From: Piromyces finnis finn
Lineage: Eukaryota > Fungi > Neocallimastigomycota
Assembly (NCBI GenBank): GCA_002104945.1
Contig: MCFH01000081.1
Coordinates: 1-64,000, forward strand
DNA length: 64,000 bases
Reading direction: 5' to 3'
The translations under genes were made by a program, and so were the position numbers. Every line of letters begins with the position of its first letter. Position 1 is the stretch's first letter. Shown piece after piece: positions 3,539 through 36,163 of this stretch. The notes under the pieces were generated by a model that had not been told where the DNA came from, did no database searches, and saw only the letters and a program-made list of their open reading frames with translations.

Positions 3539-6500
3539 AATTATAATTCATTTAAATTAGTCTTAAATTCTAAATGTCTTAAATATTAATATTTTATATT
3601 TACACATATAAATCATATTCTTGTTTCTTATTTTACATCAATCTATATATCTTTGTTTTTTTTATATTACATTAATTCATATTTAAATATAATCATTATT
3701 AATAAATAAATTGAAACATTAAACTTTTTAGCTTTTTTTTTTTTAAATCAATTCTATATAATATCAAGAAATTTTTTTATTATGACTTTAATAATCCTAA
3801 CTATATAAATATACAATATAAATATTCATATTCTATATAAAAAAAAAGAGAGAGAGATAACTAAAATATTTAGATACCTTTAACATAACAAAATATTAAA
3901 TTTATTGTATTAATACTTTTATTAAGGATTTTATTCTTATATTAACTATTTTATTATATAACTTATCAAAGCTTTTAATAAAATTTTAATGATTACATTA
4001 TCAAAACTAACTTGATTATGAGTTATAAATATAGTTGTTATAAATCAAACTTTTGATAAACTTTTTCTTTTTTAATTTCAAACTTATTAATATATATATC
4101 ATATTTAGCATTAATATTTAATAATTTAATAAATAAAATATAATATTTATTAATAATGATTTTTCTTTCAACCATTTTATTATATATATATGTTTTGTCT
4201 TTATAACATCTAAACTTTTAATAATAATAATATTATTATTATTAAAGATTATCAGTTTATAATTTAATTATTATTATGAAATTGTTTTAATTCTTTCTTT
4301 ACATTTTTTTACTATTCATAAAATATTTGACACTGCTTAGCTAAAATTTTATAGGCTAATAGCCTATAAATTTATATAAGAAATTATAAAATGAATTTTT
4401 AATCATAGTCAAAATCATTTTAAAAAAAAACATTTTAAAATTAAAAAACTATATTTTTTCAAACTAAAAGATTTTACACGAATTATAAAAAAAAATAACT
4501 AGATTATTATTATTTTATTAATATATCCTTTAAAATTTGATACTTGTTTTACAATAACTTTTCATAAATTTATAAAATAAAACTGATTGCCCATTATTAG
4601 TTCACAAATATAAATAAATATTTAAATGTGTGTAGTAGGGTAATAGTAAAAGTATTTTTATTATATAATTAAACATAAACAAAAAAAAATAAATATAATT
4701 AGTTAATTAAATCTATAGCATGGATAATGTCAATGGATTTTTAAATTTAAATATTATTCTTTTTTTTAAAAAAATCAATAATGATTCAAAAATTTAAATT
4801 ATTTATTAAATAAGCATATTGTATAATTAAATATATTAATTTTTCAACTAGTAAAAGTAATTTTATATTTTTCATATTTATATAAAAAACAAAATAGTAG
4901 GGGTTCAACAGTTCAACTAACACTACATCTTTGTTATTAAAGCAAAACTATTTTGTAATTTGATAAGCCATATATATATAAAAAAAAGCTAATAATTATT
5001 AAATTATTCTTTAATAAATAAAACTTGAAATTCGGGTTAGGTTATCAAATGATTTAAATTTTTATAATATAAATACGATTTATTTTTAATAAATAAAAAT
5101 ATAGACTAATAATAAAAATATAAAATAGATTATAGCTATTACTATTTGAAAGTCTGTTATTCTAATACGGATGTATTCTTTAAACATTTATGATCCTTTA
5201 TTATATATCACATAGTTTAATTATTTAAGGTGATGTCCTCATGCTTCTCACACCTATTTCTATCATTACACAAAGAATAACTTTAATTTTAATTTTTTTA
5301 TATATTTGTATATATTAATTTTGTATTCAGTAATTTAATTTATATTTCATTTACAAATATTGGTTAAAATTACAATAAAAATTTTTAGTGAAACCTTAGA
5401 AAAGGATTTTACTGAAAAATAATATAATTTAAAGTTTAAATTATGATTTATGAACTTAATTAAAATCTATTCCAAATAAAGAAAAAAGCAAATATAATTA
5501 ATACAAAAGTTTATTTTTATCATAATATTTTATAATAAATAAGGTTTATTAATGAGTTAAAAATGTGTAATTTTAATTATTAAAAATCTTTAACAAATCT
5601 TTAATTTCAAGTTAACTAGAAAAAAGACTAGTTTTAAATAATTACTATTTTATTTCTATTTTATAAGTTATCCTTTTTTATAATAATGTAGACTTTTATA
5701 ATATATCTTTCTTGAATTTAGCAATGTTTAATAAATACATGACAATACAAATTATGAAACAAGTGTTTATATAGAATAATATTTTATGGTAATAAATTTT
5801 GATGCAAATTACCATAATTTAAAATATTGACGGATAAAAAAATTAGAATATTGAATTTAATCCACCAATTTCATTTTTCTTACTAAATTGATATATAAAT
5901 AAATATATTGATTCATTATATTATTTATATAATATATATAATATTATTTGAATTTAAATCATAATCAACAAATAAAATAAAAATTTAATACATTATTAAC
6001 CTATAAATAATTATATTAATATCAATATATTCTAATATATGTCATTAAAAAATTATAACATATTATATACTCAATTTAATTATGGAATATTTTTTAAACA
6101 TCATCATGATTTATAGGATTTATGAAATACAAGAATGGAAACTTTAAAAAACATGATTTAAATACAACTTAATATTTAGCCAAATAATAATAATAATAAT
6201 AAAAAAAAGAGTATGAATATAAAAAAAAACAATAATTTTTCAATAATAAATGTATCATTTAAAATTAAAAGTAATTGTAATTACTAAAATAGATAGTTAG
6301 TATAGTTTCACTATTGAGTACATTAAAACTTAACATTAAATAGTTATCATTATAATATGATATCTTTTTTTTTTTCTATACAAAAAAAGATATTAGAATT
6401 TATATAGATTAGCCATAAAGTCATAATAGTAATCTCTTTTTAAATATATTTATGAGAATAATAAGTGTGTGGAAATTATATGTAGAATTATAAAAAAAAA

Positions 6501-23818: not shown

Positions 23819-26303
23819 TTAAACCTTGAATCCATAAATGAAACCATTTGTCCATTTTGGAACATTGATATTTGGGTATCTACTTAACCAAGGTTGACGG
23901 AATGGATTTAATTGGATAGCACTAGTACTAGCTGGGAATCTAATATTACAACTATGTCTAAGAATGTGTTTGCCAATTTCACATTCAGTTTCTGAACTTT
24001 CAATTACCATACAAACGGTACTTTCAACTGTTTTACCAGTCTTGGTGCGAATTGGATCAATAACTTCATATTGGAATAAATTCATGGTTTTTGTTTCCTT
24101 TGGTTTTATATCTTCTTCCTTTTTATTTTCTTCTTCTCCTTCTTCTTTTTTGTCTTCTTCCATTTTTTCTTTATCCTCATTTTCATTCTTTTCTTTTTTG
24201 TCATTTTCATTTTTAACCTCAACAGTAATATTATGACTAAATAAGTTTTTGGTGGCATCAATACAAATAACAACATCAGCTGGATATTTATCAATTGGGA
24301 AACTAGAATAGTTAGTACGAGCAAGATGTAAACGAATACAACTTTCAAAAGTTTCAGATTTAAATTCAATACTTAAATCACGACGTTTGGCTAATACAGT
24401 TTGTGTCATGTATTCTTCATAAGGTTGCTTTGAAAGTGGTAAAGCAGCCATTTCTGGACCAATAAAGAATATATCTAAAGTAACATTTCTAATTAAAGGT
24501 AAAAGACATTGATAAAGTTCTAATACTTCAATATTGGTTTGTGATGGATTGACAATGTGAATACATAAATTAGTACCACTAGCAAGAGATAACTTTTTTG
24601 GAAGATCACGGAATTGTGGTGTTATTTTATTTAAAATATAAAAAATTGAAAGAGGAGTGGTGAGAAGAAGAGCTGCTGGATAGAAATCAGAAGCTTTGGC
24701 TTTAAAGTAATCTTTCCAGCAACTAATAACTTTTGGTGAATTTTGGAATCCAGATTCTAATGAGAAATGCTTAATCCATGGTAAAAATTCTTCTGGGAAA
24801 CCATCATTTAAGTCTCCATGATTTTCATAGTATTTATCAACCTTTTCTTTAATATTATTATCGTTTTCATTTTCAGTTTTGTTTTCTTCTTCTGATTTAA
24901 CTTCATCATTCTTATTATTTTCATCTTCTTGGACGTTTTCTTCGGTTTTTAATTCACTTTCTTCTTCAGGTTTTTCTTTATTTTCTTCTGTAGATTCTTT
25001 TGGTATTCCATTGTATGGTAAACCAGTCATGGCTAAACGATGAGATACAGTAAATGTACCATCGAGAATTTGAGGTATTGCCCATAAACCACCTACCTTT
25101 GTTTTTATTTTGACACTGCTGGAATCATTTTCACTGTTAACAGAGGCTTCAATTTCTTCTTTAGTATACATTTCTGGGAAAATTAAATGCTCATCTAATG
25201 ATTTTAAATTAAGATATGGGATATAAGATAATTCCTCAACTTGACTTTTAGCATGCTCGACATGAGCTTGCATTTGCTTACAATAGAATTTATGAAATTG
25301 CCAGTCATTTACTTGACCTTTGCACATATATAAAATATTATTTTTAAATATATATAACATATATATTGTTTTAAATAAATAGATAATTAATAATTCGATT
25401 TTTAAAATTTAGATTTTTAAATGTCATTTTCAAGAAATATAAATGATATTTCTATATAATAATTACATTGTCTTTGGCAATAATTAACAGCTTTACATCT
25501 TGAACATCTGAAAATTTTTAATAATGGATTAGAACAATGATTACAAATTAAAAATGTTCCATTTTCTTCTTTTGGAATTTCTTTAACAATTTTTATTCCA
25601 AGTTTTTTAAATGGTGCAACAATTTCTTCTTTAATTTTATTTAAGGAGGCTTCATCCAAGGATTTTTCGGATATTTCATCATCAATAATAAGATAAAGAG
25701 GTCTTCCATTAATGATGCCTCGGTTCATTGGAAAGACTGAAGCACGACATATAATGGTGTAAAGTTCTTCAATTGTTGGAATATGTTTAAATGATTCAAA
25801 ACCTACTAAAGGATCTGGTTCATCAATTTTTTCAGTTTTAGATAAAATGGTAATATTGACAAGATATAAAACTACATCTCCCTTTTTATTTATTATATTT
25901 TATGATTGATAAATAAATTTCAGAAATCCATTTAAATTATTATTCGCAATGATAAATCAATTTATTATTTTTATTTTAAATATCATTCCATTTAATATGA
26001 AAATGTATTATTAGAGATTATTATATAATATGTATAATATATAATATTTTTGTAATAAAAAAGTATATATATATATATATATATAAACATTATTAATTTA
26101 TTATTAAGGTTTTTATAAATATTTTTTTAAAAATTTCATTCAATTAATATATATTTATATATTAATCTCTCTCTTACTAAATTAGCAGTTTGAATAGAAA
26201 GTTTCCAAGTTTCTGCTCTTTGAGGAACATGAGAGGCCTGTTCTAATGCATCTTTTTTTTCTTTTATTCTATCAGATTCGGTAAATGGATGAGATGTAGA
26301 CAT
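23819..26303 (-). CDS. MYND zinc-finger protein with an MSS51/ZMYND15-like C-terminal domain
   Basis: Exons 26178-26303, 25467-25881 and 23819-25317. Splicing reconstitutes CNHC..CSRC..YCQRQCQVNDWQFHKFYC (MYND). The C-terminal LLTTPLSIFYIL..LCIHIVNP..LDIFFIGPE..QLNPFRQPW resembles the MSS51-like C-terminal domain, from memory. Confidence 0.75.
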
Positions 26304-28112
26304 TTTTATTATTGGTAAATTTCAACAATAATAATAAAAAAATTTTTATTTCTATTAAAGATTATTTTTACCCAATTATTTCTTTTATTTTAAATTGTTC
26401 CATAGATAATTATAATTTTTTTTTTAATGGTATCAAATGCTTTTGAATCTTTAATAATTAAAATTTAAAAGGTGATTTTATAAAAATTAAAGTTTAATCA
26501 ATTATAAATTTACAAAGATTATAAATAAATAATGACTAGGTATAATGTATTTAGCTAGTTTAATTAGAAATAGGAATAGTAATTTTATTTAATTTCTAAC
26601 AGGATTAAAAATCAAGGTTGCCAAAATTTGACAATTACAAAGTAATACTAACCTTTCTTTTAGTCTTCAACCATTAATTTTTTAATTTTTGTCTTAAACC
26701 TTCTAATATTGACAATTACTAGTTAATAATATATTTACATAGCTTTTGGAAGAAGTTTAGTATTAATAACAAAGACAATATATAAGAAAAAATTATTTAG
26801 CATTTATATAAAATTTAATATTTATTTAATATTCTTGTTTTTTTTTTTCTTTGATTTACTAATTTGTTATATATAATACTTAATATTTTTTTTTTCTATT
26901 TCATCATATATTTTTTTTTCTTTCAAGAATGAATTTAAATACTTTATACACTAAAATGACTATAAAATAATATTCATTAGATAATTAGGATTATCATTAC
27001 CAATGTTATTATTATATATAAGACTTTTAAAATGTTCTTTATTAAGGAATTTGAAGTTAAAACTAAGTATATAGTCAACCAAAGTTGGATTCTTTGATGA
27101 AATCAGCTTTTAGAAACTTTAATATCTAGTATTTATTCACTTTTTACATTTGCAAGCTAGTAGAATATATATTAATACTCCTACTGTTTATATTATAATA
27201 AAAGGAAACTTTTATTTCTAGTTTATTTTTTTAGTAATATTACGGTTTATTTTTTTTTTTTAAAATCTTTACAAATCAAAGTTATTTAACAAACAACTAT
27301 ATACATATAAATATACTAATTTTATAGTTTAAGTGTAACTGAAAAATAGAAACGAAATTATGATCAACATTAGTGGCTGATCTTACTAGCTTATCTACTA
27401 ATTTTTTTAACCTTTTCAATTAGTGTACTTATTGTTACTTTTTTAAAATACAACAAATATCTTTGAAACTTGTATTATATTAATTAATTTAATCCCTATT
27501 AAAAAAATTAAAAAAAAATTTTTAAATGAAAATAAATAAAAATGAATGTATTCTGGTGGTCTTAATTAAAAATTAAAAAAACCTTTTGTTATACTAGAGA
27601 ATAATAGTTATATTTGATTTTCAATGTAGCTAATAGACAAAAAAAAAAATTTTTTTTTTAAAGGACATGATTATGATCATCAAGCTTGTACTGCTATTTA
27701 ATATTAACTTTTTTGTTATTGCTTCAATTTTTTTATCATTGGTCAATAACTTAAAATGAAATTTTAATAAGGAGTATAAAGAGTGCTTTAGTAATTATTT
27801 AAAATGAGCAAACAAAATAATAACCATTAAATTTAACATTAATTTTTCTAATACCATTTTTTCAATAAATTTTTATAAATGTGTCTAGTTTAATTTGACT
27901 TTTACAGAGTTTTTTTTTTTTTTTTTTCCATCCCTTTAAGTTATTAATATTAAAATCTTTTTCTACAAGAAATTTTTTTCTTTACACTAAATACTTATAT
28001 GTATTACTATTTACTGAATAATTATTATTAATTATTTTATTATTTAAACTAATGAAGAAACCAGAAATATCCAAAAAATAGTATTTAAGAAAATAAGTAA
28101 AATACTTGAATC

Positions 28113-28150
<38 letters not shown>

Positions 28151-28637
28151 GAAAGGAGAGTATAATTTTTTGTAGCTATTTAATTTATAAGTTTATATTA
28201 TAATAAGTAATAATACATATTGATAATATTAAAAAATAAGAAATAAATAAATATAATATAATATATAAAGATATAAATATAAAATAAAATATAAAAATTA
28301 TTTAAGTTGCATCATAGGTTTGAGGAATTCTGCAATTTATACTGTGTGAGATATATACCTAATAAATTAAATAAATTAAATGAATTGAATAAAATAGAGA
28401 AGTAATATAATAATATGACAGTGTGGTGTCTGTCTATTATACCCTGTTACGCGTCTTTAATGATTTCAATTAATAAAATATAAATATTAGACTTTGTTTA
28501 TGTAATATTAAGAAAGCTCCTTTGTCATATTGATACAACGTCGTTGCACTTGATTATATTTTATGTTTTATTTAACGTATAAAAAACCAACTTCATAGAT
28601 AATAAGGAAAGCTGCGAGACACTATATATATGAAACA

Positions 28638-28941
28638 TGTCTTACAGTTTTTCCAGCATTGATATTTTTGGCTGTTCCTTTAAATCTTTTGAACATTGAC
28701 TATTGTTTACCAATAATATAAGACATTATTCATATTAGAAGTTCTACAGTGACCATCAAAACATTGATTATTTAAAAGTATAATTATTCACAAAATATTA
28801 AAAATTAGGTATTATGCATTAATGTATTCTAATTTTCTTTTTAACGGCATCAATTATTTTAAACTTTATTATTAATTTAATTAAGTTAATTAAAATTATA
28901 ATAAAACTTTATCATGGATAATCTCCATAGCTCTTTTGGCC
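28638..28941 (-). mobile_element. Decayed relic fragments of the same LINE family (at least 3 pieces)
   Basis: 28638-28715 aligns to the ORF C-terminus (TGTCTTAC...CTTTTGAACATTGAC..CCAATA). About 28786-28830 aligns to the 3'UTR. 28833-28941 is a 3' end (TTTTCTTTTT-AACGGCATC...) with internal deletions. Confidence 0.7.
28929..28941. repeat. Target-site duplication 1, AGCTCTTTTGGCC (partner at 33618-33630)
   Basis: Exact 13-bp direct repeat; the left copy abuts the unit 3 tail. Confidence 0.85.
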
Positions 28942-29876
28942 TTTTTTTTTTTTTTTTTTTTTTTTTTAACGGCATCAAAATATTTTAAACTTTATTATTA
29001 ATTTAATTAAAATTATAATACATGTAATAAAAAAAAAAACTAAAAATAAAAATAAAAATAAAAAAAATATGTTTAAATAAACACAAATGAATAAAAATTG
29101 GGTATAATGTATTCTAGTAATTTTAATTAAAGTAAGAAAGCCACTATCATACTAAAGTATAATAATTGTATTTGACTTCCAATGGGACACCGAGCCAAAG
29201 ATCAAAATTTTGTCATGGAACAAAATTATGATCTCCATTGGTTGCGCTGGCCCTCCTGGCCTGTCTTACTGTTTCTTCAGCATTGACGCTCTTGGATGTT
29301 GCTTCAAACCTTTTGAACATTGACCATTGCTGGCCAATAGCAAAAGGCATGATTTTGGTTAGAAGTTCCGCGGTTACCGTCAAGAATGGTGTTCCTTCGT
29401 TAGTACCAGATTGAATCTGACGCTTACAAAGTTCTTTCCATTCCCTTGAATTGTAATTAATATTGTTAAAACTTCTTCCCCCAAGAAGGAATTAAATATT
29501 TTACTGCACACACTAGAATAATCATACACATTAATATTCACCGGATTATTAGAACTATTACTATCATCAACTAAATTACTATCTAAATTAGAATTATTAT
29601 CATCACTATTGCTATCATTACTAATATTATTATTTCTATTACTACTATTGTTATTATTACTATTGTTATTATTAATATTATTACTATTACTATTACTGTT
29701 ATTGCTATCTCTGCTGATATTAACATTTTCATTATTATTGATAGGACTATTGGAATTACGTTGACTGAAAAAATTTAATAGATGGACTATAGAATCATAA
29801 TGTTTAATACGGATATCTCTAAATGTTGGACAATCTAAAAACCAATGTTTAATACTTTGATCTCCACACTTGCAAC

Positions 29877-29880
<4 letters not shown>
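28942..29880 (-). mobile_element. Non-LTR retrotransposon 3' fragment (unit 3): CCHC region, 3'UTR and A26 tail; frameshifted
   Basis: T-run 28942-28967 next to AACGGCATC. Encodes CCKCGDQSIKHWFLDC. One base is missing (GGAATTAAAT vs GGAATTTAAAT) relative to units 1 and 2. Confidence 0.9.
29868..29880. repeat. Target-site duplication 2, ACTTGCAACATGA (partner at 33606-33618)
   Basis: Exact 13-bp direct repeat; the left copy abuts the unit 2 tail. The terminal A comes from TSD1 rather than the element (element reads ...CAACATGG). Confidence 0.85.
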
Positions 29881-29911
<31 letters not shown>

Positions 29912-31677
29912 GGCATCAAATATTTTAAACTTTATTATTAATTTAATTAAAATTATAATACATGTAATAAAAAATTAAAAATAAATAAAAATAAAAAAAA
30001 TATGTTTAAATAAACACAAATGAATAAAAATTGGGTATAATGTATTCTAGTAATTTTAATTAAAGTAAGAAAGCCACTATCATACTAAAGTATAATAATT
30101 GTATTTGACTTCCAATGGGACACCGAGCCAAAGATCAAAATTTTATCATGGGACAAAATTATGATCTCCATTGGTTGCGCTGGCCCTCCTGGCCTGTCTT
30201 ACTGTTTTTTCAGCATTGACGCTCTTGGATGTTGCTTCAAACCTTTTGAACATTGACCATTGCTGGCCAATAGCAAAAGGCATGATTTTGGTTAGAAGTT
30301 CCGCGGTTACCGTCAAGAATGGTGTTCCTTCATTAGTACCAGATTGAATCTGACGCTTACAAAGTTCTTTCCATTCCCTTGAATTGTAATTAATATTGTT
30401 AAAACTTCTTCCCCCAAGAAGGAATTTAAATATTTTACTGTACACACTAGAATAATCATACACATTAATATTCACCGGATTATTAGAACTATTACTATCA
30501 TCAACTAAATTACTATCTAAATTAGAATTATTATCATCACTATTGCTATCATTACTAATATTATTATTTCTATTACTACTATTGTTATTATTACTATTGT
30601 TATTATTAATATTATTACTATTACTATTACTGTTATTGCTATCTCTGCTGATATTAACATTTTCATTATTATTGATAGGACTATTGGAATTACGTTGACT
30701 GAAAAAATTTAATAGATGGACTATAGAATCATAATGTTTAATACGGATATCTCTAAATGTTGGACAATCTAATAACCAATGTTTAATACTTTGATCTCCA
30801 CACTTGCAACATGGACAGTAGTTAGGACAAACTGGATCAACAAATTTAGCAGCTTTGGCAACTCTAGCATCCAACTTGTATCCGCTTCTTGCTTTCAATA
30901 GCCAGTAGAAGCCATAGGCAAACTCTGGGTACTCATAACATAATTTAATAAAATCTTTAGTTTCAATAAACTTATTATCATCATAATATTGCGCTTTGAT
31001 TGAATTCCCTTTGAGATCTTTCCAATAAAAGTTTTTAACTGCTTTAACATCTCCATGTTTCTTTAGCTTTTTATCAAGTATCCTACTTGATTTGCACCAC
31101 GTGTATTTTCTAAATTTAGGAATGTAATTGACAAGGTGTGAGATAATACAATTTGAGTTTTTCCATTTGTTAAAACATCTAATCTGAGCTAAAGCACATT
31201 TGGCTGACAATGGAGGAATATTCAAATCTTTTGAGATAGAGTATAAAGATATAAACGATACAGCTTTATGAACTCCGGCAACCCATCGTATTCCTTTGTT
31301 AACATGCTTCTGAGCAATCCTAGACCTAGCTTTGTTGGATCCAAGTAATGGTGCAAAGTATGAAACTCTGCTAATCACTTGTGAGTTAAGTACTAGCTTT
31401 TTGAAGGGAATAGGAATATTAGGATTTCTTAAGAATTTACTGACTGAAAAAAGTCCTTTCAAAACCTTGTTATTAAGAGCTTTAATTACTGGTTTAAGGG
31501 ACAAATTCTTATCAAATGGAACACCAAGATAAGTATAACAATCAGTAGTTGGAATGGGTTGTCCTGCTAAGTAAAATGTTGGATCTCTCTTGATCTGATT
31601 TTCTATTGATTCAGGACGAATCACCATCGTTGAACATTTCTGGATACCAAATTCCATTTCATTATACAAGGCCCATT

Positions 31678-31680
<3 letters not shown>
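29881..31680 (-). mobile_element. 5'-truncated non-LTR retrotransposon (unit 2): RT thumb, CCHC zinc knuckle, 3'UTR and A28 tail
   Basis: ORF from EWALYNEMEFGIQKC..CYTYLGVPFD (post-catalytic RT region) to CPCCKCGDQSIKHWLLDC. The 3' end is GATGCCGTT(A)n. Confidence 0.92.
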
Positions 31681-31724
<44 letters not shown>

Positions 31725-33605
31725 GGCATCAAATATTTTAAACTTTATTATTAATTTAATTAAAATTATAATACATGTAATATAAAAATTAAAATAAAAT
31801 AAAAATAAAAAAAATATGTTTAAATAAACACAAATGAATAAAAATTGGGTATAATGTATTCTAGTAATATTAATTAAAGTAAGAAAGCCACTATCATACT
31901 AAAGTATAATAATTGTATTTGACTTCCAATGGGACACCGAGCCAAAGATCGAAATTTTGTCATGGAACAAAATTATGATCTCCATTGGTTGCGCTGGCCC
32001 TCCTGGCCTGTCTTACTGTTTCTTCAGCATTGACGCTCTTGGATGTTGCTTCAAACCTTTTGAACATTGTCCATTGCTGGCCAATAGCAAAAGGCATGAT
32101 TTTGGTTAGAAGTTCCGCGGTTACCGTCAAGAATGGTGTTCCTTCATTAGTACCAGATTGAATCTGACGCTTACAAAGTTCTTTCCATTCCCTTGAATTG
32201 TAATTGATATTGTTAAAACTTCTTCCCCCAAGAAGGAATTTAAATATTTTACTGCACACACTAGAATAATCATACACATTAATATTCACCGGATTATTAG
32301 AACTATTACTATCATTAACTAAATTACTATCTAAATTAGAATTATTATCTTCACTATTGCTATCATTACTAGTATTATTATTTCTATAACTACTATTGTT
32401 ATTATTACTATTTCTATTATTACTATTGTTACTATTACTATTGTTACTATTACTATTGTTACTATTACTATTGTTACTATTACTATTGTTACTATTACTA
32501 TTAATGTTATTGCTATCTCTACTGATATTATCAATTTCATTATTATTGATAGGACTATTGGAATTACGTTGACTGAAAAAATTTAATAGCTGGACTATGG
32601 AATCATAATGTTTAATACGGATATCTCTAAATGTTGGACAATCTAATAACCAATGTTTAATACTTTGATCTCCACACTTGCAACATGGACAGTAGTTAGG
32701 ACAAACTGGATCAACAAATTTGGCAGCTTTGGCAACTCTAGCATCCAACTTGTATCCGCTTCTTGCTTTCAATAGCCAGTAGAAGCCATAGGCAAACTCT
32801 GGGTACTCATAACATAATTTAATAAAATCTTTAGTATCAATAAACTTATTATCATCATAATATTGCGCTTTGATTGAATTCCCTTTGAGATCTTTCCAAT
32901 AAAAGTTTTTAACTGCTTTAACATCTCCATGTTTCTTTAGTTTTTTATCAAGTGTCCTACTTGATTTGCACCACGTGTATTTTCTAAATTTAGGAATGTA
33001 ATTGACAAGGTGTGAGATAATACAATTTGAGTTTTTCCATTTGTTAAAACATCTAACCTGAGCTAATGCACATTTGGCTGACAATGGAGGAATATTCAAA
33101 TCTTTTGAAATAGAGTATAAAGATATAAACGATACAGCTTTATGAACTCCGGCAACCCATCGTATTCCTTTGTTAACATGCTTCTGTGCAATTCTAGACC
33201 TGGCTTTGTTGGATCCAAGTAATGGTGCAAAGTATGAAACTCTGCTAATCACTTGTGAGTTAAGTACTAGCTTTTTGAAGGGAATAGGAATATTAGGATT
33301 TCTTAAGAATTTACTGACTGAAAAAAGCCCTTTCAAAACCTTGTTATTAAGAGCTTTAATAACTGGTTTAAGGGACAGATTCTTATCAAATGGAACACCA
33401 AGATAAGTATAACAATCAGTAGTTGGAATGGGTTGTCCTGCTAAGTAAAATGTTGGATCTCTCTTGTTCTGATTTTCTATTGATTCAGGACGAATCACCA
33501 TCGTTGAACACTTCTGGATACCAAATTCCATTTCATTATACAAGGCCCATTCATTAACTCTTCTAAGCATCTTTTTTAAGCATCCTCTTGTTGGAGCACA
33601 AATAA
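31681..33605 (-). mobile_element. 5'-truncated non-LTR retrotransposon (unit 1): RT thumb, CCHC, 3'UTR and A41 tail
   Basis: 536-aa ORF at 31960-33570, near-identical to unit 2 apart from SNPs and a longer Asn/Ser repeat. The frame stays open upstream (FICAPTRGCLKKMLRRVNEWA), i.e. it is cut just after where the RT xADD motif would be. Confidence 0.92.
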
Positions 33606-33617
33606 ACTTGCAACATG

Positions 33618-33704
33618 AGCTCTTTTGGCCTGTCTTACTATTTCTTCAGCATTGATGCTTTTGGATGTTGCTTTAAACCTTTTGAACATTGACCATTACT
33701 AGCA
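33618..33704 (-). mobile_element. Right half of the older relic copy that was interrupted by unit 3
   Basis: GCTCTTTTGGCCTGTCTTACTATTTCTTCAGCATTGATGC... aligns to the young copies with mostly C>T/G>A differences and continues the relic at 28916-28941. Confidence 0.8.
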
Positions 33705-34081
33705 AGAGTACATTTGTATGCAAGATTAAACTTTTTTTAATTAAATAAATTATTAATATTATTATATACTTTTACTTAAATAATAAATAAGTGTAAGTGA
33801 TAAAACTTAAAAGTCCACAAAAACATACACATTTAAAATAATATACTCATCAACTCACAAAATAAAAACAACCGATAATACTATTCTACACATTTAATCC
33901 TTATTTTTAATTCCTTATACACAATAATTATAAATTTAATTTGTTATTTCTATTATTTCTATTAAAATAAAACTTAAATTGTATACATTTTTTAATTTTA
34001 ATATGATAAATGAAACATTTATCAATAAGACAGACTTTATTATATTTGCATATATTATAAAGAATTTTACATTCAATATAT

Positions 34082-35155
34082 TTATTCGAATTTTCTTTCG
34101 AAAGCAGCAATCTTTTGTCTGACACGGTCCTTTCTTTGCTTGAGGTTGCGCTTTTGGGTCTTGAACTTCTTGAGTTGAGTCTTTTGTTCTTCGGTAAGTG
34201 GAGCGCGTTCCTTCTTGGTGAATTCTGGGTTGGCACGGATCTTCTTGTGAGCTTCAGCGTACATACCTTCAAGATCGTCAGCAGAAACACCAGCAGCAAT
34301 GAATCTGGAGAATTGCTTCTTGTACTTTTCTTCATCTTCTTCTTCAAGAGTACGCATGTATTCAGCGACGTGTTGACCGTAGATGTAATCTCTGAGGACT
34401 TCGGAGTCGAGGCTCTTTTCTTCAGAGTCGTAACCTGGGAATCTGGTTTCACTGTGTGGAATGAGAACACCACCATCAGCAGCACCCTTCATAACAGCGA
34501 AGACCTTGCTACCAGTAGTAGTACGTCTAAGACCAACATCAAGGAAAGCCTTGAATGGACGTGGACCTTCTTCGTTTTCTTCAACTTCGAAGAATTCACC
34601 GTTAGCTTCAGTGACACCTTCGTATTGGGAGTCAAGACCGAGCTTCTTAAGAACACGACGAGCGGCAAGGAGACCAGTGGCGTAAGCAGCAGCCCAGTTA
34701 GTTAAACCAACCTTAATACCGTAGTTTGGTAATTCGTGAGCGTAAGCAGCACTAACGATGTAATCACCTTCAATCTTGGAGTAAACGAATTGAGCAACAA
34801 CATCAGTGTTAGTGAAACGGACAACAAGTCTGTACTTTGGAGAGTTGTACTTGTTCTTGGCTTGGGTAACTAATCTCTTACGAGCGTAGTAATCAGTTTT
34901 ACCCTCTAATAATTTTATTATATATTATTAATACTAATATATTATAATATAATATATATTTAATAATATAAACGATACTTACCACGTCTTCTTCTGTATT
35001 TGACTTGGTAACGCTTGAAGTAAGCCTTGTTCTTGACAGTCTTGACGAAAACCTAATTTAAATTAAATTCATAAATGGATGAATAATCATTAATTAATAA
35101 CAATAACCTTTAAAATAAAACATCATAATTAAACTTAAAAACAAAAAATTACCAT
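34082..35155 (-). CDS. RPL5: 60S ribosomal protein L5 (uL18)
   Basis: Exons 35153-35155 (ATG only), 34983-35052 and 34082-34905 give [36 protein letters not shown]...[12 protein letters not shown]...[15 protein letters not shown]. Strong highly-expressed codon bias. Confidence 0.98.
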
Positions 35156-35429
35156 TTTATTTAATAAATATATGAAAGAGAGAGATCCTAAATAAAATAA
35201 TTTCTGAAAATTTTTATTTTACTTAATGAAAAATTATTACAGCCAATCAGAATTTAATATTTATATACATATTATATACTCAAAATATGATTGGTTAATT
35301 GAAGATTCGTTTGAATATAGTGTAAGCGGATTCAAGATCCATATAATTCTGTCTCTTTCAGATCTTCCTCAATTTTTTATACAGAGGGCTAATTTTGTAA
35401 ATTTATAAAACAAAGTTAAAATTTTAAAC
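35156..35429. promoter_or_regulatory. Putative bidirectional ribosomal-protein promoter
   Basis: 274 bp between divergent ATGs. Contains TGAAAATTTTT (RRPE-like, 35205-35215), inverted CCAAT boxes AGCCAATCA (35241-35249) and TGATTGGTT (35289-35297), and AGGGCTA (about 35385-35391). Confidence 0.55.
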
Positions 35430-36163
35430 ATGGTTGAGGTATATGAATATTAATGAATGATTAATAAAATATAAATAAAAAAATTTGAATAAGTGTTGTG
35501 TTTAGTGCTAAATATGTTTTTTAATGAATGATATTATTATGTTTATATATGTAATATATAATCTAACTTATTGTATTATATTACATTATATATATGTAGT
35601 TCAAGAAGATTGTCGAAGTTGGTCGTGTTGTCATGATCACTTACGGTCCAGATGCCGGTAAATTAGCCGTCATTGTTGACATTATTGACCACGCCAGAGT
35701 AAATATTAATTATATTGATGGATGAATGATTTTATGATATTATGTTATTAACAATTAAAAATATAAAACAATAGGCTTTAATTGATGGTCCAACCACCAA
35801 CGTTGCTCGTCAAGCTATGTCTTTCAAGCGTCTTAACCTTACCGCCGTCAAGGTTGCCAACCTCCCACGTGGTGCTTCTTCCCCAGTTGTTGCCAAGCGT
35901 CTTGCTGACCAAAAGATTAGTGAAGTTTTCGCTAAGACTACTTACGCTAAGAAGCTTGCCGCCAGAGCCGCCAGAGCTAACCTTACTGACTTCGGTCGTT
36001 TCAAGCTTATGATCGCCAAGAAGCAAGTAAGTTATTAAAACAATTATTGATATAATATTTTTTATAAATGCTTTAACATAGTAATTAATTCACATTTTTT
36101 ATATATTATCAGCGCCGCAATGTTATTAACCGTGAATTTGCTAAGCTTAAGAAGCAAAACTAG
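35430..36163 (+). CDS. RPL14: 60S ribosomal protein L14 (eL14)
   Basis: Exons 35430-35438, 35600-35698, 35775-36026 and 36113-36163 give [42 protein letters not shown]...[18 protein letters not shown]. Confidence 0.97.

Follow-up and report, generated by a model that had tools for sequence, protein, structure and literature searches.

A head-to-tail pile of nested LINE copies behind RPL5 in Piromyces finnis and the position of its insertion sites

Why should a retroposon insert repeatedly, always in one orientation, into the DNA behind a single gene, and what would guide it there? This question is raised by a stretch of 64,000 nucleotides from the anaerobic fungus Piromyces finnis (assembly GCA_002104945.1, contig MCFH01000081.1, positions 1 to 64,000 of the forward strand; the whole stretch is called the window hereafter), in which a pile of long interspersed nuclear element (LINE) copies lies downstream of the ribosomal protein gene RPL5. 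An earlier note, made from the sequence alone, had described successive insertions at a near-fixed position and had proposed targeting by position and not by sequence, possibly to a strong RNA polymerase II (Pol II) termination zone. We found that the locus adds a real, well-resolved and statistically non-random pile to what is known of LINE nesting and targeting. The evidence partly supports a positional or regional rule that is based neither on sequence nor on tRNA genes, while the terms "near-fixed position" and "terminator landmark" exceed that evidence.

Nested target-site duplications order the insertions

The pile extends over ∼5.6 kb (about 28118-33706) and is composed of head-to-tail LINE copies of the apurinic/apyrimidinic endonuclease (APE) type, all of them on the minus strand like RPL5. 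Two copies are decayed relics (A and R) and three are young and 5′-truncated (units 3, 2 and 1, from the far side towards RPL5), as the earlier note had listed. Element coordinates (ref) are those of a full-length copy from another locus, L001, which belongs to family 1 of the two related LINE families encountered here. Relic A (28149-28760), the oldest copy, is a 3′ fragment resembling family 2, recognised by DNA and amino acid matches: positions 28370-28599 are 69% identical to the 3′ region of that family (E 7e-15), and positions 28638-28759 show 76% identity to ref 5124-5245 and 55% amino acid identity to the C-terminus of the open reading frame (ORF). A T31 run at 28118-28148 is, tentatively, its poly(A) tail (A31), and the sequence preceding it, ...CTCTCCTTTCCT(A)n, is similar to the family-2 tail ...CTCTTCCTAGTCT(A)n found at a second P. 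finnis locus, L002. The family-2 match together with this probable tail carries the pile leftwards to about 28118, so that the array of the earlier note stands but the left end given there, 28638, does not.

Relic R is split in two. Its 3′ part (28826-28941) has a decayed tail and the GATGCCGTT end, with GATGCCGTTAAAAAG at 28837-28851, and is 87% identical to ref 5472-5545 over 28843-28941; its 5′ part (33631-33706), which forms the edge of the pile on the RPL5 side, is 92% identical to ref 5173-5245. Other genomic copies read straight past the split point (loose contig ends at 33625 and 33629). Since relics A and R overlap in element coordinates, A is a separate, older copy. Between the two parts of R lie the three units. 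Unit 3 (28942-29880) comprises an A26 tail (28942-28967) and ref 4603-5558. Unit 2 (29881-31681), the 3′ part of an insertion that we call X, comprises an A28 tail (29881-29908) and ref 3735-5558. Unit 1 (31680-33605) comprises a tail of 40-42 A, contained in a T42 run of the plus strand (31680-31721), and ref 3685-5558, although its last 50-52 bp (33554-33605) may belong to X. These tails agree with the 26, 28 and 41 A reported before. The truncation point of unit 1 falls directly after the FADD motif of the reverse transcriptase (RT) and its ORF of 536 amino acids is open to the natural stop; RNA and DNA contigs of other copies continue past 33605 into sequence for ...CCGGLFADDI. Searches by DNA and by protein found the same LINE family nowhere else in the window.

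The order of these insertions can be read from two nested pairs of exact 13-bp target-site duplications (TSDs), all on the minus strand. TSD1 (AGCTCTTTTGGCC on the plus strand) has its 5′ copy within relic R at 33618-33630 and its 3′ copy in the last 13 bp of the 3′ part of R (28929-28941), and it brackets everything from 28942 to 33617. TSD2 (ACTTGCAACATGA on the plus strand) has its 3′ copy in the last 13 bp of unit 3 (29868-29880) and its 5′ copy at 33606-33618, where it is made up of 12 bp of the 5′ tip of unit 3 and 1 bp of TSD1; it brackets 29881-33605. In the window the first 13-mer occurs at 28929 and 33618 only and the second at 29868 and 33606 only, as had been noted, while the 12 bp of TSD2 derived from unit 3 are also present as internal LINE sequence in units 1 and 2. 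The nesting gives the order A, R, unit 3, unit 2 (X), unit 1, from oldest to newest. Identity to the LINE family drops with increasing distance from RPL5, from about 97.6% in the units to 87-92% in R and 76% in A. Nested TSDs, truncations and this gradient together bear out the claim of successive independent insertions with the newest nearest RPL5. Molecular-clock dating of the three units was tried and rejected, as all of them differ by ∼2.4% from the reference and thus carry no age signal.

Could the units have arisen instead by tandem duplication or unequal crossing-over, or be an artefact of the assembly? A tandem higher-order repeat of LINE pieces does exist at one locus of Neocallimastix lanati, and among the DNA contigs listed for 32900-35400, the stretch without internal repeats that the contig check covered, none bridges 33605-33631, so that the assembly junctions there have no independent confirmation. 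Against this, each unit is truncated at a different point and ends in a tail of its own, the tails being unequal in length; two exact TSD pairs are nested, and a mis-assembly does not make matched TSDs. Moreover, unit 1 differs from unit 2 or unit 3 by 2.5-3.0%, more than the 1.24% between units 2 and 3, and has an Asn/Ser repeat 60 bp longer than in the other two. Truncation points, nested TSDs and divergence exclude tandem duplication and make an assembly artefact very unlikely, and we give this explanation as a whole next to no credence. The additional private changes of unit 1 reflect a different source lineage and not its age. At this locus, the order of insertion and the TSDs are established, as is the origin of the units from independent source RNAs.

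The junction between units 2 and 1 deserves separate treatment. Both units lie within one shared TSD pair, and unit 1 passes seamlessly through the end point of unit 2: the 5′ end of unit 2, CAAGGCCCATTCA (31667-31679), is identical to 33541-33553 within unit 1, practically where the earlier note had placed the joining site (about 33542-33554). From the sequence, this fits an insertion of unit 1 ∼50 bp inside X, with the cDNA end resolved by homology to X. Alternatively, the RT may have jumped from one RNA to the tail of another, or a "dimer" transcript produced by read-through at a different pile may have been copied. The junction A(n)-TGAATGGGCCTTG did not recur in any of the loci examined.

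On the far side of relic A there are further traces. Six A/T homopolymer runs of at least 12 nt occur in 27000-36000, all of them T on the plus strand, including T12 at 27250 and T18 at 27910, and 27503-27626 matches the LINE 3′ untranslated region (UTR) weakly. By their sequence, these traces may be minus-strand retroposon relics older still and farther from RPL5 than relic A.

Position of the insertion sites behind RPL5

We located the insertion sites relative to RPL5, the gene upstream of the pile in the LINE sense. Its identity (RPL5/uL18) rests on the Pfam domain Ribosomal_L18_c (E 1.5e-16). The last exon, the 94-nt 3′-UTR and the poly(A) site occupy 33988-34492 on the minus strand, with the stop codon at 34082 and the poly(A) site at 33988, where RNA contigs of two runs begin with 12-13 non-templated T. 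The edge of the pile (33706) lies 376 bp past the stop codon and 282 bp past the poly(A) site. The nick sites of unit 3, X and unit 1 lie 452, 464 and 529 bp past the stop codon (358, 370 and 435 bp past the poly(A) site), well within the 450-540 bp estimated before, and 89, 101 and 166 bp from the RPL5-side edge. If every insertion had been equally likely at any point of the spacer then present, such clustering of the three datable insertions would have a post hoc probability of about 1.2e-4, or 1.4e-5 when the shared orientation is included. The sites are therefore clustered far beyond uniform chance, in a regional sense, and this part of the claim of position-specific targeting holds; the distances of 89, 101 and 166 bp show that the position is not fixed.

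The surroundings set the scale of this clustering. The window is strongly AT-rich (GC content of 13-34% in 2-kb bins). The next gene downstream, represented by ORFs at 23819-25728, is also on the minus strand; the spacer measured ∼2.7 kb before the pile, which occupies its RPL5-proximal tenth. On the far side, the AT-rich spacer at 25728-28117 (∼2.4 kb) holds no young copy. Between the poly(A) site and the pile, an AT-rich single-copy spacer (33707-33987) contains no gene or motif recognised by depth, Rfam or B-box scan; its DNA depth is ∼200 versus a summed 1e5-7e5 for the LINE. At 33740-33990, RNA depth is about zero, which gives no sign of stable read-through, though contigs cannot exclude rare transcripts. 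The pile is flanked on both sides by unique sequence and genes, between expressed housekeeping genes (RPL5 and the neighbouring ORFs). Within RPL5 itself, a 77-nt intron (34906-34982) is spliced out in RNA contigs.

If position was not fixed, was sequence the guide? Ten target sites, some in the window and others in related loci, were lined up at their nicks and revealed no shared motif, in agreement with the lack of a consensus observed before. The GC content of the TSDs ranges from 9 to 54%, and the only trend, judged by eye, is a T at the first TSD base in about eight of the ten. Their length is 11-14 bp, save two long ones of 37 bp (L002:1333-1369/7059-7095) and 45 bp (L004:9866-9910/11203-11247).

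Nested stacks recur elsewhere. At L002, a stack on one strand begins ∼300 bp beyond the stop codon of a gene in the same orientation. A 4.6-kb family-2 LINE (TSD TTGTAAGCAGGATA) interrupts an old relic there, roughly 45-70 bp from the 5′ end of that relic. The family-2 LINE is itself interrupted 352 bp from its 5′ end, by a full-length family-1 copy with the 37-bp TSD, and again ∼70 bp on by a 28-bp family-1 tail fragment (TSD GTTAGTTTGTTA). Co-oriented stacks behind co-oriented genes were also present in Anaeromyces robustus (L004, L041) and N. lanati (L005, L007, L040), and in the latter species a family-1-like copy lies near the 5′ end of a family-2-like fragment (TSD TGTTGTCCATATT). These nests join families without nucleotide homology at the site. 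That stacking recurs in P. finnis at L002, in two other genera and across several families argues against recognition of a specific sequence. In 8 of 9 cases the LINE has the orientation of the gene upstream of it (P = 0.02). As an observation of its own, L040:7660-26040 of N. lanati contains a block of LINE fragments in tandem, with a period of 4.1-4.4 kb, at least 4-5 copies and 91-96% identity, indicating that LINE stacks can be amplified secondarily by duplication.

The same nests might be taken to mean that the LINE recognises LINE DNA, by sequence, structure or RNA-DNA homology, and that the position behind RPL5 is accidental, set by where the first copy happened to land. All three datable insertions of the window did enter LINE sequence of the same orientation, nests recur at other loci, and the seamless 5′ junction of unit 1 with X is what would be expected if the cDNA annealed to a homologous target; the Zepp LINEs form nested clusters (PMC3446292). 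However, the three targets of the window lie at differing element coordinates (about ref 5246, 4603 and 3735) and share no motif. The nests cross families that have 37-41% amino acid identity and no local nucleotide homology, which makes homology or recognition of self-sequence a poor explanation. Furthermore, relic R appears, tentatively, to have entered non-LINE DNA ∼65 bp upstream of relic A, and the full-length L001 copy lies in non-LINE DNA. Nor would sequence recognition account for the bias towards the 5′ edge in truncated hosts that have no 5′ sequence in common. We consider self-targeting of this kind unlikely.

The edge bias also bears on an explanation that needs no targeting at all, in which insertion is nearly random and selection spares copies of harmless orientation in dead DNA behind gene 3′ ends, a passive safe haven. 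The pile does lie behind the 3′ end of RPL5 and a long way from the promoter side of the next gene, and an abundant family (1448 contigs of the DNA run match the stretch 32900-33605) would have made many trials. LINEs are also generally co-oriented with their neighbours, as selection on orientation would give: 27 of 37 genes flanking LINE copies (L001-L007, L040-L042) are on the LINE strand, a bias that suggests either same-strand gene clusters or a general rule of LINE orientation with respect to transcription or replication. Yet under this explanation all positions in a pile should be equally neutral, whereas LINE-in-LINE nests in hosts longer than 900 bp (n = 4) lie at 0.00, 0.03, 0.08 and 0.09 of the host length (post hoc P about 7e-5). 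Likewise, the sites of the window stayed within 166 bp of one edge while the pile grew to ∼5.6 kb, and the ∼2.4 kb of AT-rich spacer on the far side received no young copy. Selection without targeting seems to us a distinctly improbable account.

We then considered an RNA polymerase III (Pol III) landmark, that is, targeting of an unrecognised or decayed Pol III gene adjoining the pile in the manner of the TRE3 elements of Dictyostelium, which lie 14-450 bp downstream of tRNA genes (PMC5006619). No tRNA was detected in the 64-kb window by ARAGORN or Rfam, in line with the earlier note, or within 10 kb of the copies in ten long related loci by ARAGORN. At the gathering score, Rfam recognised no family in the window or in the five loci searched; around the pile, Rfam at E ≤ 10 gave nothing relevant, and nothing in the spacer 33707-33987. 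The B-box scan gave no match less than 26 kb from the pile. We therefore rejected a Pol III landmark, tRNA or other, as a candidate, and the corresponding explanation is very hard to sustain.

Several observations weigh against a positional rule, or limit it. The distance of the sites from the edge varies, from 89 to 166 bp in the window and from roughly 45 to 500 bp at L002, and across loci the pile edges lie roughly 300-1000 bp past stop codons. The P values for clustering and nesting are post hoc, from a sample of ∼10 loci reached via annotated LINE fragments. The co-orientation of 27 of the 37 neighbouring genes means that LINE orientation could reflect selection or replication direction. 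The single TSD pair of units 1 and 2 possibly denotes one event, in which case the insertions number four and not five, and local alignment for a TSD of relic R, as for relic A, found nothing convincing. The solitary full-length copy of L001, in plain AT-rich DNA ∼1 kb past a gene stop, shows that stacking is not required, and the short interspersed nuclear element (SINE)-like retroposon nested in that copy sits at 0.91 of the length of its host LINE.

With these points counted, the reading that we favour, by a little more than even confidence, is that a regional or positional cue, located at the upstream LINE edge in the 3′ flank of a gene, guides the integration complex to its site, rather than a DNA motif, self-homology or a Pol III gene. 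The pile itself was built by serial endonuclease-dependent target-primed reverse transcription, with ∼13-bp staggered cuts, in one orientation and with the newest copy nearest RPL5. At least four independent insertions are involved (five if units 1 and 2 are separate), of APE-type single-ORF LINEs of the two related families. Relic A came first and relic R followed, apparently at the 5′ end of A or a little upstream of it; unit 3 then landed 76 bp inside R and insertion X 1 bp from the 5′ junction of unit 3, and unit 1 would have landed ∼50 bp inside X, its 5′ end being resolved by homology to X. Each new copy entered ∼0-165 bp from the RPL5-proximal (5′) edge and displaced the older copies from RPL5. 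One candidate cue is the zone beyond the poly(A) site in which Pol II would terminate; another is a chromatin boundary between the nucleosome-poor AT-rich spacer and the GC-richer LINE body. The "edge of the previous copy" fits the data as well as a "fixed distance from a landmark", the two differing by tens of bp in the window, and a Pol II-termination landmark is only compatible with sites lying 358-435 bp past the poly(A) site.

A wider proposition would be that LINEs of the Neocallimastigomycota read a positional mark at the 3′ ends of Pol II genes (termination zone or chromatin boundary) and integrate co-directionally, so that piles grow from the gene-proximal edge; we advance it as a doubtful generalisation. 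If true, it would be the first case of Pol II-terminator-directed, sequence-independent LINE targeting, and gene-proximal entry would also explain how repeat piles grow in the genomes of anaerobic fungi. If only nesting and selection are at work, the locus is an ordinary, well-resolved case of LINE stacking.

The LINE element and its families

To what kind of element do these copies belong? The best protein match of the repeat ORF is a partial hypothetical protein of P. finnis (97% identity), and the copy at L001, in the same assembly, is 95-98% identical in DNA to the repeat of the window. This solitary family-1 copy (L001 5784-11950) is full-length and measures 5.56 kb once the nested 595-bp SINE-like retroposon is removed. 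The leader of this copy measures 765 bp, the tail is A24 and the TSD has 11-13 bp, TTTCTTAAAAA(A)C. The element consists of one long reading frame with, in order, an N-terminal region of ∼240 amino acids without assigned function, an APE domain (Exo_endo_phos, residues 243-454 of a 795-amino-acid N-terminal ORF; E 3e-6, above the Pfam cut-off), an RT domain (RVT_1, E 6e-33) and a Cys-rich end with a weak zf-RVT match. The full-length copy at L002 is open for 1221 amino acids across APE, RT and C-terminus. No separate ORF1 of the L1 type was found upstream, the 765-bp leader having no long ORF. In a ranking of solved structures only, the closest to the RT is human L1 ORF2p (E 1e-22), followed by R2 (1e-16); the 795-amino-acid N-terminal ORF has no relative in that set. 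Poly(A) tails, variable 5′ truncation and TSDs are all present, and the designation "fungal LINE" given before is correct. What this analysis adds is the full-length 5.56-kb copy with its single APE-RT ORF.

Family 2, defined from L002, ends in ...CTTCCTAGTCT(A)n and family 1 in GATGCCGTT(A)n. In spite of their amino acid identity of 37-41%, the two have in common a 5′ module of ∼150 bp that is ∼90% alike (L002:978-1128; L001:5784-5955) in otherwise unrelated elements, and, judging from the letters alone, it is possible that this module is a mobile promoter or a 5′ RNA module. The family-1 LINE of L002 carries its first 121 bp as a tandem duplication (L002:1371-1666). The retroposon nested in the L001 copy (L001:10833-11427) is a candidate SINE: it is non-coding, includes a stretch like the B box of tRNA genes (GGTTCGACCCC), ends in an A41 tail and is bounded by an exact 13-bp TSD (TTTAACAATATCA). 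Its 3′ end is unlike the family-1 tail.

As to activity and abundance, contigs matching the LINE at 32900-33605 were present in all three RNA runs, with depths of hundreds to thousands, as against zero in the single-copy spacer; with all copies taken together, the family appears to be transcribed. The 1448 matching contigs of the DNA run indicate that it is abundant. The protein index contained two annotated P. finnis LINE-derived proteins only. Of two metagenome scans, the first gave no match and the second gave 32 short LINE-only contigs without flanks.

Comparison with known LINE arrays and targeted LINEs

The HeT-A/TART arrays of Drosophila, which the earlier note had cited as a precedent, and the MoTeR arrays of Magnaporthe arise by addition to chromosome ends or telomere repeats and lack TSDs. 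They resemble the pile in being head-to-tail, co-oriented and polar in age. The pile, however, is internal and each of its datable members has a 13-bp TSD, so it is not a telomeric array. The junction of units 2 and 1 looks like homology-assisted 5′ joining or template switching, processes that would account for this junction only and not for the whole pile. The sequence-specific LINEs R1, R2 and Tx1 use a single conserved target, whereas the ten sites compared here have no motif in common. A search of the available literature for LINE arrays in anaerobic fungi found none.

In appearance, the closest systems are nested clusters. Zepp LINEs of Chlorella and Coccomyxa are 5′-truncated poly(A)-tailed copies nested in non-random clusters of several kb (PMC3446292). 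Copies within copies in co-oriented nested clusters were likewise found in the window, L002 and L007. Each chromosome has a single Zepp cluster, which is thought to be centromeric or terminal, whereas the present pile lies between ordinary expressed genes and piles appear numerous; moreover, several LINE families nest mutually here, and entry is biased to the upstream edge without being tied to one site of the element. Among fungi, the non-LTR (long terminal repeat-lacking) element Cnl1 of Cryptococcus neoformans forms arrays of full-length and truncated copies at subtelomeric places (10.1101/2021.08.11.455996), in contrast to a pile that is internal in the window, lies 282 bp past the RPL5 poly(A) site and has its nesting defined by TSDs.

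In the choice of site, the nearest parallel is with the TRE5 and TRE3 elements of Dictyostelium, the other precedent named before. The two systems have in common APE-type LINEs, a compact AT-rich genome, a site set by position and not by sequence, and the expectation of repeated hits at one landmark. To our knowledge, sequence-independent site choice by APE-type LINEs is understood in mechanistic detail only for these elements and their Pol III landmark. TREs have two ORFs and depend strictly on tRNA genes, inserting either about 50 bp upstream of them or about 100 bp downstream (PMC5006619); the LINE described here has one ORF and neither a tRNA gene nor a Pol III signal nearby, so the precedent stands for a position-directed APE LINE and fails with respect to tRNA. 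LINEs of several families that enter at the gene-proximal edge, in the orientation of the upstream gene and without a Pol III gene nearby, may represent a second, independent route to "safe" integration in a compact AT-rich genome, and a Pol II-terminator-directed LINE, if real, would be the counterpart of the Pol III-directed TREs. Taken together, our analysis suggests that the pile works most like the Dictyostelium TREs while it looks like the nesting of Zepp and Cnl1.

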